Assembly: GCA_009103225.1 (NCBI GenBank)
Contig: RHPI01003422.1
Coordinates: 1 to 5,674 of the forward strand
Reading direction: 5' to 3'
DNA length: 5,674 nt
Origin: Chlorokybus atmophyticus
Lineage: Eukaryota; Plantae; Mesostigma and Chlorokybus algae
The notes below the pieces were generated by a model. That model did no database searches. It was not told the DNA's origin and saw only the letters and a list, made by a program, of their open reading frames with translations. The first letter of the stretch is position 1, and every line of letters begins with the position of its first letter. The position numbers and the translations under genes were made by a program. This document shows positions 2,002 through 5,674 of the stretch, in pieces.

Positions 2002-2134
2002 GCTTGCTATGCTCAATACGTTGCAACAGCTCAACGCTTCACAAACCGAGGCCACCAAGCACGCCGCCGCCACACACAGGAATAGCCGTTGTATGTCTTA
2101 TGTATGCTGCTGTGGCTATTTATTACTCAGGAGT

Positions 2135-2170
2135 CCTAACCCTAACCCTTACCCTAACCCTAACCCTAAC
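2135..2170. repeat. Interstitial telomere-type repeat, 6 x CCTAAC (TTAGGG on the minus strand), with one CCTTAC variant
   Basis: cctaac cctaac ccttac cctaac cctaac cctaac, read directly from the sequence. Confidence 0.95.
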
Positions 2171-2232
2171 TTGTGCGCAGCTGACTTCTGCGCAGTAAGA
2201 CTCCGAAGAAGCACAGCTGTCCGCAGTGCTTC

Positions 2233-2283
2233 GGCGGCGGCGGTGGCGGCGGCGGAGGTGGCGGTAGTGAAGGTGGTGGCGGG
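2233..2283. repeat. Imperfect (GGC)n tract
   Basis: ggcggcggcggtggcggcggcggaggtggcggtagtgaaggtggtggcggg. Confidence 0.85.
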
Positions 2284-2406
2284 AGTGAAATCGTTGGTTG
2301 ACTGTTTTGCGTCTTGACGTTTCCGGGCCTACTTGCTAGGTTGCGGTGCTGGAAGCTGTTTGTAGCTGCTACCAAGCTGCAAGGTTGTGTGCTGCTCTCA
2401 AGCACA

Positions 2407-2692
2407 ATGTCAGTGTATAGGATGAGCGTTGAGCTTATCTCCAAACGGGTAGCTAAATTGTTGAGAGGGGTTCCAAGTGCACAAGCAATAGCGGAGAAGT
2501 TCAAGGAGGAAGAGATTGATGGAGAAGCTTACTACAGCCTCTCAGCAGAAATTCTTGCACAGATCACACCTAGGCTGAGCATTGCTTCGCGGATCCTTGA
2601 AGACGTGCAGAAGTTAAACAGGGATGAGCCGAGGTTGCAAGCTGAAGATGAAGAGGAGCAAGACGAGGCGGGAGCACAACCTGGGGACACAG
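2407..2692 (+). CDS. Gene B exon 1: sterile alpha motif (SAM) domain and acidic linker
   Basis: SVELISKRVAKLLRGVPSAQAIAEKFKEEEIDGEAYYSLSAEILAQITPRLSIASRILEDVQKL matches the SAM hallmark F-x-x-x-EIDG-x-A and the C-terminal RIL-x-x-(V/I)QKL helix. Confidence 0.85.
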
Positions 2693-4830
2693 GTGTGCTT
2701 GCTTTCAACTAGTCTGCTGCCAAGCTGCTGGTGCAACTTTATTGCTCCTGCAGCTGAAGCTCTGCTAGCTCTGCTTGCTCATTGGTATGCTTTGGTCTGC
2801 AGCTTCAGTCAAGCTGAAGCTACAACTCAATTGAACCTGCGGCTTGGCTGAAGCTGCAGCTTGAGTAATGGCTGCATATCGGCTTTCTGCCAAGCAGAGC
2901 CTCAGCCAAGCCGCAGCTGCAGTTTAGCTTAAGTGGTAGGTTGGGTGAAGCTCTACTTGCTTTGCTGTATTTTGTACGCTTCGGTCTGCAGCTTTAGTCA
3001 AGCAACAGCGTTAGCCGAGCCACAACTGCAACATAGCTGAAGCTGCAGCTTGGCTAAAGCTCTGCTTGCTTTGCTCTCTTTTGTAAGTGCCATGCGCTGA
3101 CTGTTGGCCTTGTGCGCAGGAGCTGTTGATGAAGTTAACTGTGAAGACGAGTCAGAGGCAGTCAAGAAGGCAAAGCTGGAAGAAAAGTGCTTTGCCCCTG
3201 TCGCTGACAAGCCTAGGGGACTAGAGCAAAATGGGCAAGCTTACTTGAAGAAGAAGGACGAGACACAGTGGAGAATACAGGAGGACAACCGCAAGCTTCT
3301 AAAGGAGAAGCTGTGGGCCAAGTTCCCAGACCACTGTGTTGGCAAGAGCTTCAATCGGGCCGGCTCAGATTATGACATGAGGGAGGAGGTGGTGGCGGAT
3401 GTAATGCAGAATCACACTCCGCTGGAGATCAACGGACAGACATTGCGCTGGCCTGTCAGTAAGTAATCTGCGTCTGCCTATGTGCATGTGCGTCTATATG
3501 CCAGCTGCCACCTGCCAGATGTCTTGTGCTTCCTGCAAATGGCTGCTCACTGCCTCTTGTTTGCAGAATGGACTCGTGAGCAAATCCGCCGGTTTGTGGA
3601 TAATGCAAGACGGGGCCATCCATTAACGCCAGGCGAAACGGTAGGCTTGACCCGTGAGCAGCGCAAGGAGAAGATGCGCGCTGCACGCGCTGAGAAGCGC
3701 GCTGACGCAGAGGAGCCAGCTCCACGCCGCTCGCGCACAGACTACGGGCTTGGCCCACATTTCACCGTTGCAGACTTTCCCTCCAGCCAAAATGCTGTGC
3801 TGCTTGCCTTGTTGACTGCTGAGCCGCCTTCTCAAGCGCAGCTGCGTGAGGACTGGGTGGCTTTCAGGTACGCCATTTATCCTCTTGCACAAGGCTTTGC
3901 ACCCGCACTCGTAAGGAATTCATATGCGGCTGGTGCTGCAGACCCGCAGGAGATGCTGCAAGCACCAGCGGCAGCAGCAGCCGCAGAGTTGTGGCTATTG
4001 GGCGCGGTCAAGTACTGGAGGTGCTTGAGCAAGAGACTCCTTGGCGCAGCTACAAAGTGAAGGTGCTGGAGTGGTACAACGCCAAGGGTATCGGTGATCA
4101 ACGCGTCTACATGCCAGTACGTGACACGGACGGGTATGCTGGCCAGATGACCGGGGACGAGCACTTGTGCAGCAATATCTTGGTGAGCGTAGTAGAGTGT
4201 GTGCTGCGGCACAGCACATTGCAAGCGTAACTGCAAGGAAGATTATATGCGTGACATGCAATGCGGCTGCTTGAGTGATGCAGGGACGCAGTTGTGCTTG
4301 GCCTGCATCCTTGGTAGCCCCGTCTGCAGTCTGCCCTTGCTCAGACTGCTCTTCAGGCGACTGCATTGCAGAAGTCACCCCAAGATGCGTTCGCGCGCTC
4401 GTGGTTGACAAGCGCGTGCAGCCAGAAGACCAGCATGACATCAATCAGAGGGTAAGAACGTTGCAGTGGGCTGTAACGTGTGCAGCATGCTTGCATGATG
4501 CACACTTGTAACAATTCTTGCTTGCAGATCAATCGTTGCTCTGACCACCTCATGCACTTGGCTGGCATCTGCTGCAATACCTTGTGCGCCAATGTTCCCA
4601 ACCGCGAGAGCTTGCTGGAGGTGTACACTTCCTGGAGGGGGACATACGGGACGCAGATTGGGAGGCTGCCGAAGGAGGACCATCTACTTGCAAAGTTCAC
4701 TGACTCGCAGATCGGTCTCATGCTTGTTACATTTGCAGTCAACAAGCGCTGGCTGGTACAGGATGACTCTGGAGAAGCACGCTATGGCTGGCACTGGAAT
4801 AGTCAAGCCAAGCGCCAACCCGGTCCATAA
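2407..4830 (+). CDS. Spliced gene B, about 530 aa: SAM domain + homeodomain-helix-like + BAH-like + winged-helix-like putative chromatin/DNA-binding protein. Exons 2407-2692, 3120-3458, 3567-3867, 3987-4182, 4284-4451, 4528-4830.
   Basis: All five introns are GT-AG and phase-compatible (1,1,2,0,0). The joined CDS is 1593 nt with no internal stop. Donors are GTGTGC, GTAAGT, GTACGC, GTGAGC, GTAAGA. Acceptors are GCGCAG, TTGCAG, CCGCAG, ATGCAG, TTGCAG. The 5' boundary of exon 5 is the least certain. Confidence 0.78.
2756..3075. repeat. Intronic degenerate duplication (189-bp offset) with an internal 15-bp perfect inverted repeat
   Basis: 2785-2814 and 2974-3003 are identical at 27 of 30 positions. 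GCTGAAGCTGCAGCTTG occurs at 2847 and 3036. CTGCGGCTTGGCTGA (2837-2851) is the reverse complement of TCAGCCAAGCCGCAG (2902-2916). Confidence 0.85.
3120..3458 (+). CDS. Gene B exon 2
   Basis: This is the open part of ORF 3104..3466. It has a CTGAC branch motif at ~3097, a TGTGCGCAG acceptor and a GTAAGT donor at 3459, with phase 1 at both ends. Confidence 0.8.
3567..3867 (+). CDS. Gene B exon 3: homeodomain-helix-3-like motif and basic tract
   Basis: Splicing gives WPVKWTREQIRRFVDNARRG, which resembles the TALE homeodomain helix 3 pattern xxxQIxNWFxNARRR. The acceptor is TTTGCAG and the donor GTACGC. Confidence 0.75.
3987..4182 (+). CDS. Gene B exon 4: BAH-like / SH3-barrel segment
   Basis: DWVAFRVVAIGRGQVLEVLEQETPWRSYKVKVLEWYNAKG...HLCSNIL(GRSC) resembles the BAH pattern D-x-V...I-x-x-(I/V)-x-E(I/V)...V-x-V-x-W(F/Y)...I-x-GKC. 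A strong GTGAGC donor lies at 4183. Confidence 0.68.
4284..4451 (+). CDS. Gene B exon 5 (Cys-rich start, boundary uncertain)
   Basis: ATGCAG at 4283 is the phase-0 acceptor in the ORF 4275..4511 frame; the other CAG sites I checked in 4284-4371 are out of phase. The GTAAGA donor at 4452 is strong. Confidence 0.5.
4528..4830 (+). CDS. Gene B terminal exon: RFX/D5-type winged-helix-like domain
   Basis: ESLLEVYTSWRGTYG...FTDSQIGLMLVTFAVNKRWLVQDDSGEARYGWHW resembles the lY..Y..Wc...G / s...FG..L / k.r / g..Y.g pattern of RFX and D5-primase C-terminal wHTH domains. The acceptor is CTTGCAG with an upstream TGTAAC; the stop is TAA at 4828-4830. Confidence 0.68.
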   Translation: MNRCSDHLMHLAGICCNTLCANVPNRESLLEVYTSWRGTYGTQIGRLPKEDHLLAKFTDSQIGLMLVTFAVNKRWLVQDDSGEARYGWHWNSQAKRQPGP

Positions 4831-5148: not shown

Positions 5149-5674
5149 TGGGCCGTTATCGGCATGACTGCTGGTCCACCGAGGTCGACACACCAGGAGC
5201 TGTGCCGTCAACGGCACGACTGCTGCTGCTGCTGTGCCGACGTCGGCAGAAGTGCTACTGTGCCGAAGACGGCAGAAGCGCTGCTGTGCCGAAGTCGGCA
5301 GAAGTGCTATTGTGCCGAAAACGGCAGGATCGTTGCTGTGCCGCAGACGGCAGAAGCGCTGTTGTGCCGAAAACGGCATAAGCGCTGATGTGCCGAAGAC
5401 GGTGGGGTCGCAGCTGTGCCGAAGACGGCAGAAGCGCTGCTGTGCCGAAGACGTTAGAAACACTGCTGTGCCGAGGTCGGCCCAACGCAGTTTGCCCCGT
5501 CAGCGGCAGTAACCAGCTTGTGCCGGCTGACAGATGGTGACTTACGATCCTCTGCCGGCACAAAGCGACTTGTGCCGTCTTGGGAGAAGAACTGCTCGCA
5601 GAACTCGAAGGCAGGTGCCGCTGACGGCACAACTGGCTTGTGCCGAGAACGGATTCTGCTGCAGGCGCCGTGTG
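5149..5674. repeat. Tandem array with a 26-bp period, each unit carrying the palindrome (T)GTGCCG-N4-CGGCA; subterminal-repeat-like
   Basis: Exact TGTGCCG occurs at 5201, 5233, 5259, 5285, 5311, 5337, 5363, 5389, 5415, 5441, 5467, 5519, 5571 and 5639. Degenerate in-register units occur at 5149, 5175, 5493 and 5545. GTGCCG-CTGA-CGGCAC spans 5615-5630. Confidence 0.95.

Follow-up and report, generated by a model that had tools for sequence, protein, structure and literature searches.

A predicted six-exon orphan gene with a SAM-like N-terminal module in a Chlorokybus atmophyticus contig

The contig RHPI01003422.1 of the Chlorokybus atmophyticus assembly GCA_009103225.1 (5,674 nucleotides (nt), all of which were analysed and are called the window here) carries on its plus strand, between positions 2407 and 4830, six open reading frames (ORFs) that we read as the exons of a single gene. 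On balance we favour a lineage-restricted nuclear gene of an intron-rich eukaryote, encoding a hydrophilic protein of about 545 residues with a SAM-like N-terminus, and we think that this protein is best filed as an orphan that carries a SAM-like module in an unrecorded combination. The coordinates of the exons and of the other features discussed below are collected in Table 1.

Gene structure and coding signal

The six exons join into one open frame of 1638 nt (545 codons plus a TAA stop) with no internal stop. The start, ATG 2407, is the first in-frame ATG past a stop codon at 2311-2313. A mechanical list of ORFs gives six separate plus-strand ORFs within 2314-4830, and these match the six exons. 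An earlier reading of the region, made from the letters of the DNA and referred to here as the sequence-only reading, had claimed that the ORF track splits one gene into six pieces and that hand-splicing gives a product of about 530 residues. The former claim is borne out, the pieces joining via five canonical introns, and the latter comes close to the 545 codons that we count. Introns 1 to 5 measure 427, 108, 74, 101 and 76 nt and begin with GTGTGC, GTAAGT, GTACGC, GTGAGC and GTAAGA, respectively, and all five end in GCAG. The GC content of the window as a whole is about 53%, its GT..AG introns are short, and it carries a pair of spliced genes transcribed divergently; in the joined frame of the plus-strand gene, the GC content at the three codon positions is 0.61, 0.45 and 0.60.

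Coding potential was assessed with a codon model, scored leave-one-out and trained on those exons of this gene and its minus-strand neighbour that were placed with confidence. Exons 1 to 4 score between +19 and +37 bits in frame and between -19 and -51 bits out of frame; when they are taken together with three exons of the neighbour, the ranges are +13 to +49 bits and -9 to -51 bits. Exon 5 gives +6 to +7 bits and exon 6 gives +14 in the frames proposed for them, the other frames of both being negative. Scores of the five introns range from -35 to +4 bits, and most antisense frames fall below zero, the highest reaching +8 bits. The six-exon gene and its divergent neighbour have their codon usage in common.

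The junction between exons 4 and 5 is the sole ambiguous one. The pair 4183/4283 has the best consensus, 4199/4329 and 4199/4356 are likewise in frame, and the choice among them alters about 10-20 residues. A path via acceptor 4371/4372, which follows a second open frame through exons 5 and 6, was rejected, as it scores -6 and -17 bits on these exons against +7 and +14. The resulting 545-residue product is hydrophilic and net acidic. The gene is predicted from genomic sequence, and we are confident that it looks real.

The N-terminal module and the rest of the protein

Every exon was searched, scanned and folded singly, and exons were concatenated solely to count length and stops. When exon 1 was searched with phmmer against all PDB sequences, eight matches were obtained at E<=10, and seven of the eight are SAM domains of one subfamily: L3MBTL3 (E 0.014 and 0.04), PHC3 (0.014 and 0.05) and Polyhomeotic (0.2 and 0.25), each represented by two constructs, and Scm (1.8). 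The alignments are colinear over 53-58 residues and span the whole domain (residues 13-70 of the product), including the stretch F-K-E-E-EIDGEA. The same search with the five other exons, which served as an internal noise control, returned incoherent top matches with E-values of 0.066-0.96. We take the SAM matches of exon 1 to be meaningful because they are coherent in family, as opposed to the unrelated matches of the five control exons. This agrees with the sequence-only reading in two respects, since the EIDG motif is present in the translation as described and since the resemblance is specifically to SAM domains of the Ph/Scm/L3MBTL type. Judging from these alignments, residues 13-70 therefore probably fold into a helical module of this SAM type.

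Several observations weigh against this interpretation and should be set beside it. No Pfam SAM family is matched at E<=10 by exon 1 or by its trimmed core (2425-2631), and the best SAM E-value, 0.014, is marginal. The AlphaFold model of exon 1 which, like that of exon 6, is a single-sequence prediction, has a confidence (pLDDT) of 83.6 and shows helices at residues 3-19, 25-34 and 39-88. This is a generic helical bundle in which one helix of 50 residues occupies the place of SAM helices 3-5, rather than the compact five-helix bundle of a SAM domain, and a Foldseek search of the model against the PDB returned designed helical bundles at E>=0.6 and no SAM. The N-terminus had been presented as a strong SAM call; with a best E of 0.014, no Pfam match and a predicted structure other than the SAM fold, that strength is not sustained. 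With regard to function, the product is net acidic and has no strong basic patch, which disfavours direct DNA binding; the junctions are predicted ones. As for the model, single-sequence predictions of helical peptides typically over-extend helices, and we suspect that the long helix of exon 1 is over-extended because a proline, at residue 55, falls within it.

Downstream of the N-terminus, the sequence-only reading had placed a homeodomain-like helix-turn-helix (HTH), a BAH-like barrel and a C-terminal winged helix-turn-helix (wHTH) of RFX/D5-like type. Exon by exon, none of the three has support above noise from Pfam, PDB sequences, PHROGs or folding. The helix TREQIRRFVDNARR, on which the homeodomain-like call was built, is present in the translation as described (3572-3613, in exon 3). 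No HTH family was found in Pfam for exon 2 or exon 3, just a sub-threshold match to DNA_meth_N on 3569-3640 (E 0.027; 14.9 bits, where the cutoff is 25), and exon 2 is similar to nothing in Pfam, the PDB, the word search or the locus scans. Likewise, exons 4 and 5, taken apart, have no BAH match in Pfam and nothing in the PDB: the sole Pfam signal on exon 4 is SH3_3 (E 0.12), and exon 5 gives nothing in either collection. The presumed second half of the BAH barrel is moreover atypical of that domain, because it is Cys-rich (CPCSDCSSGDC...C).

For the putative wHTH, exon 6 has neither a Pfam family nor a PDB sequence match, and its AlphaFold model, with a pLDDT of 40.9, is unusable. The secondary structure of that model, which is of low confidence, consists of a helix at residues 26-40, a second helix at 59-72 and a two-strand hairpin at 75-87. 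Such a helix-helix-hairpin arrangement, as modelled, is compatible with a winged helix and neither proves nor excludes one; Foldseek on the model gives noise (best E 2.2) and is uninformative at a pLDDT of 41. The analogy with Orc1/Sir3 that had been drawn from the BAH and wHTH calls did not hold either, there being no AAA+ module. No AAA or ORC/Cdc6 Pfam family was found in any exon, nor does the 545-residue layout leave space for an AAA+ module, which takes about 250 residues, and the protein does not belong to the Orc1/Sir3/Cdc6 group. We regard the negative results on HTH, BAH and wHTH as soft, because the HTH and the BAH are split by introns and there are no homologs with which to deepen the structure predictions. 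Intron 2 interrupts the putative HTH, intron 4 the putative BAH and intron 5 the Cys/His cluster described below, and each of the three was examined as halves.

A feature absent from the sequence-only reading is a cluster of Cys and His residues encoded by exons 5 and 6. Its pattern is C-x12-CxCx2Cx4C-x7-C ... C-x2-H-x2-H-x4-CC-x3-C, and its halves in the two exons match no family. We consider the cluster a candidate zinc-binding module, which it resembles more than it does the strand set of a BAH.

Searches for relatives of the protein led to no homologue. Word searches with exons 1, 2 and 3, which see proteins of 0.55-1.75 times the exon length, were blank, and full-length relatives were reached through exon 6 alone. 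An exhaustive phmmer search of exon 6 against 1.84 billion representative proteins returned one match, P0001 (E 3.3e-10), an unnamed metagenome protein of 315 residues from ENA with 4-5 near-identical repeats of 36 residues and no Pfam family. We rejected it as a homologue. Its best single repeat scores 16.7 bits, equivalent to an E of about 700 at library scale, and the E-value is low because one weak motif match is summed over the repeats. The stretch 4606-4719 (residues 27-64 of exon 6) shares [LI]xx[LV]YTxW...GRxPxxDxxLxxFxDxxxG with the repeat of that protein, a similarity that is individually insignificant and is probably a chance match between helical hairpins.

Scans of loci with peptide patterns were also blank, with exons 6 and 2 in metagenome contigs, with exons 6, 2 and 4 in viral contigs and with exon 4 in prokaryotic genomes. 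PHROGs returned only noise, and Rfam returned nothing in the window. By exact look-up, none of eight ORFs of the window is in the protein collection; the source genome is not represented there, because the ORFs of the window and the product itself are absent from it. The combination of modules had been described as unknown from any named gene, and we too found no named gene, nor any other protein, with this sequence; searching the literature for a combination of SAM, BAH and winged helix in algae gave nothing relevant. On the evidence available from these comparisons, the protein appears to be a lineage-restricted orphan.

Flanking sequence and alternative readings

Table 1. Coordinates of the features discussed, in positions of the window
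Feature	Position	Strand	Description
Exon 1	2407..2692	+	95 codons + 1 base; acidic, isoelectric point (pI) 4.5; codon model +20 bits
SAM-like core	residues 13-70, nt 2443-2616	+	EIDG at 2512-2523
Intron 1	2693..3119	+	427 nt, GTGTGC...GCGCAG; codon model -30 to -35 bits whatever the frame
Exon 2	3120..3458	+	hydrophilic; acidic start, C-terminal half helical-looking; codon model +36 bits
Exon 3	3567..3867	+	opens with helix WTREQIRRFVDNARR (3569-3613), then K/R/E-rich stretch, pI 9.9; codon model +37 bits
Exon 4	3942..4182	+	Ser/Ala-rich start, then strand-like stretch (proposed first half of the BAH-like barrel); codon model +19 bits
Exon 5	4284..4451	+	contains CPCSDCSSGDC; acceptor uncertain (starts 4330 or 4357 with donor 4199 in frame)
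Exon 6	4528..4830	+	stop TAA 4828-4830; codon model +14 bits
Cys/His cluster	4293..4587	+	exons 5 and 6, interrupted by intron 5; 10 of the 14 Cys of the protein plus 3 His
Divergent intergenic/promoter region	2002..2406	.	405 bp between minus-strand ATG 2001 and ATG 2407
Neighbour gene	2001-1747, 1562-1236, 1149-1066	-	spliced, ATG 2001, runs off the window
TGTAA	5047..5051	+	sole copy past the stop, at a distance of 217 nt; about 1 expected by chance in 850 nt

Upstream of the six-exon gene, the shared bidirectional promoter contains an interstitial telomere-type repeat, (CCCTAA)6 (positions 2135-2170), together with a (GGC)n stretch (2232-2282). Among chlamydomonadalean algae, repeats of the TTAGGG type occur in the Dunaliellinia and Stephanosphaeria clades (PMC3318450). 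The telomere-type repeat, the single TGTAA past the stop and the style of the introns would fit an alga of those clades, although TTAGGG is used by many eukaryotes. The neighbour gene on the minus strand has no Pfam match. Its exon 1 has a zinc-finger-like motif (C-x2-C...H...C) and its exon 2 a stretch, PPEGWKLEKTSTGHKWVYTHP, that resembles a WW or MBD motif; beyond its three exons lies an E/K/R-rich, coiled-coil-like region with CTC repeats of 24-27-nt periodicity at 275-459. Repeats are also found inside the six-exon gene, in intron 1, which contains many internal direct repeats, some of 79-nt units spaced by 109 nt and others of 33-nt units spaced by 189 nt, as well as inverted repeats of 55-62 nt rich in GCTGAAGCTGCAGCTTGG.

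Downstream, the palindrome TGCCG-N4-CGGCA is present in 11 copies at 5151-5629, allowing at most one mismatch, where 0.17 would be expected by chance. Most of the copies lie in a 26-bp tandem array at 5176-5540, with conserved stems and a variable 4-nt spacer. The array lies about 320 nt past the stop of the six-exon gene; the last position of the window is 5674. Candidate identities for it are a minisatellite, a set of subterminal repeats of a transposable element and a set of dimer-binding sites; its 26-bp unit is absent from viral contigs. In the same region, the pentanucleotide TGTAA, a polyadenylation signal of chlorophycean type, is a weak candidate for the polyadenylation signal of the gene.

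Two alternatives concern what the protein is. The gene could be a real orphan in which the resemblance to SAM arose by chance, the N-terminus being just an amphipathic helical or coiled segment. That would explain why Pfam gives no match, why the best E-value (0.014) is just marginal and why the AlphaFold model forms a bundle of three helices, one of them long, for which Foldseek finds no SAM. Nevertheless, the matches are family-coherent, extend over the whole domain and include the F-x3-EIDGEA core, whereas the control exons give incoherent ones, and proline 55 within the modelled long helix suggests over-extension, so that we consider a chance resemblance unlikely. At the opposite extreme stands the full four-module protein of chromatin-silencing or origin-binding type that had been proposed, with a polymerising SAM, a homeodomain-like HTH, a BAH barrel and an RFX/D5-like winged helix. 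It could draw on the SAM resemblance of exon 1, on the weak match of the TREQIRRFVDNARR stretch to the HTH-type family DNA_meth_N (E 0.027), on the strand-like hydrophobic pattern of exon 4 with its SH3_3 signal (E 0.12) and on the low-confidence helix-helix-hairpin of exon 6, which fits a winged helix. However, no family or structure match to an HTH, BAH or winged helix rises above noise, the supposed second half of the BAH is an atypical, Cys-rich cluster, the Orc1/Sir3 analogy fails in the absence of AAA+, and four such calls being jointly right is improbable. We therefore regard this architecture as highly improbable.

The other two alternatives concern the nature of the locus. In one of them, the gene does not belong to the host but travels, as a passenger or accessory, with a transposable element or endogenous virus, of which the telomere-like repeat upstream and the palindromes downstream are parts. 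The orphan status of the protein, the (CCCTAA)6 repeat at 2135-2170 and the excess of TGCCG-N4-CGGCA copies over chance (11 against 0.17), which resemble subterminal transposase-binding repeats, are all consistent with this, but no signal of a transposase, integrase, reverse transcriptase or capsid was seen in any exon or in the neighbour, no terminal inverted repeats were found between the ends of the window, viral contigs gave no match, and the codon usage is the same as that of the neighbour gene. An origin in a mobile or viral element thus seems decidedly unlikely to us. In the other, the region is non-functional, either because its ORFs arose by chance in GC-biased DNA or because it is a pseudogene that has decayed. 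Homologs are indeed lacking, the antisense strand has long ORFs too, and pairs of GT and AG readily yield spliced open frames. Still, the codon signal is frame-specific in six of the six exons, with none in the introns and little on the antisense strand, the acceptors are uniformly GCAG, the frame of 545 codons is uninterrupted, and the first exon bears the SAM-like similarity, which together make non-functional DNA a very unlikely explanation.

We thus return to a lineage-restricted gene whose product has a SAM-like N-terminus. Orphan genes that carry a single weak domain are frequent among eukaryotes that have been poorly sampled. In such a protein, the SAM-like module would allow head-to-tail self-association or docking onto another SAM protein, and either would concentrate whatever is bound by the C-terminal 330 residues and raise its avidity; these residues include the 13-residue Cys/His cluster, which may hold zinc. 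A mode of action of this sort is documented for SAMD1 (PMC11969672) and for LEAFY (PMC4844672), both compared below. The most likely role would be that of a self-associating scaffold or of a nucleic-acid- or chromatin-binding regulator. If the SAM is real and polymerises, a module of the Ph/L3MBTL type would be fused to entirely unknown C-terminal modules outside animals, which would bear on the breadth of SAM-driven assembly in nuclear regulation.

A bolder version, to which we give very little credence, is that the protein might be a SAM-polymerising, zinc-dependent DNA-binding factor of a previously unseen type that is limited to a single algal lineage. It would then recognise a palindromic or telomere-like repeat through the Cys/His and helix-hairpin region at its C-terminus, possible targets being the TGCCG-N4-CGGCA array past the stop of the gene or the (CCCTAA)6 of the promoter, and SAM polymerisation would spread the protein over the repeat arrays. 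Such a factor would be a non-animal analogue of the SAM-driven chromatin compaction of the Polycomb/SAMD1 type. Whatever its function, the locus holds a lesson for annotation: a bacterial-style ORF track shatters the gene, and of the four domains called by eye, three were reproduced by no search.

Comparison with known systems

The closest likeness is to the SAM domains of Polycomb-group proteins. Residues 13-70 of exon 1 are colinear with the whole domain, of about 65 residues, in L3MBTL3 (8y76/8y77), PHC3 (4pzn/4pzo), Polyhomeotic (1kw4/1pk1) and Scm (1pk3), and share with it the F-K/R-x-E/Q-EIDGEA stretch as well as the hydrophobic positions in helices 1, 2 and 5. The SAMs of Ph and Scm form head-to-tail polymers, in which mid-loop and end-helix surfaces are complementary. 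That of L3MBTL3 has been described as forming head-to-tail polymers as well (PMC11969672). The SAM-like module of the algal protein is N-terminal, in contrast to these proteins, and the other domains of the Ph, Scm and L3MBTL proteins (MBT, FCS zinc finger) were not detected in it. In Ph, Scm and L3MBTL the SAM is located at the C-terminus.

Orc1 and Sir3 combine BAH, AAA+ and winged-helix domains. The likeness to them is limited to the BAH and wHTH calls that had been made at pattern level, and the protein is not a member of this group. The nearest named match to the outer two of the proposed modules, SAM and wHTH, is found in the ETS factors TEL and Yan, which are animal-specific and carry a polymerising PNT-type SAM at the N-terminus and an ETS winged helix at the C-terminus; the algal protein differs from them in having no ETS or SAM_PNT match in Pfam.

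Within the plant and algal lineage, the order of parts is that of LEAFY. This factor is highly conserved and, to our knowledge, is absent from chlorophyte algae. It has an N-terminal SAM oligomerisation domain and a C-terminal helix-turn-helix DNA-binding domain (PMC4844672). The protein described here likewise starts with its SAM-like module and ends with a putative DNA-binding part, although it matched no LEAFY family in Pfam and has no detectable similarity to LEAFY.

Finally, SAMD1 has a winged helix, a polymerising SAM and a disordered linker, and binds unmethylated CpG islands (PMC11969672). Compared with SAMD1, the order of domains is reversed here, the winged helix is putative, and there is no sequence similarity beyond the SAM-like region. 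If the wHTH is real, however, the two proteins would share the same logic, that of a DNA-binding winged helix that relies, for binding to chromatin, on polymerisation of the SAM and on a disordered linker.

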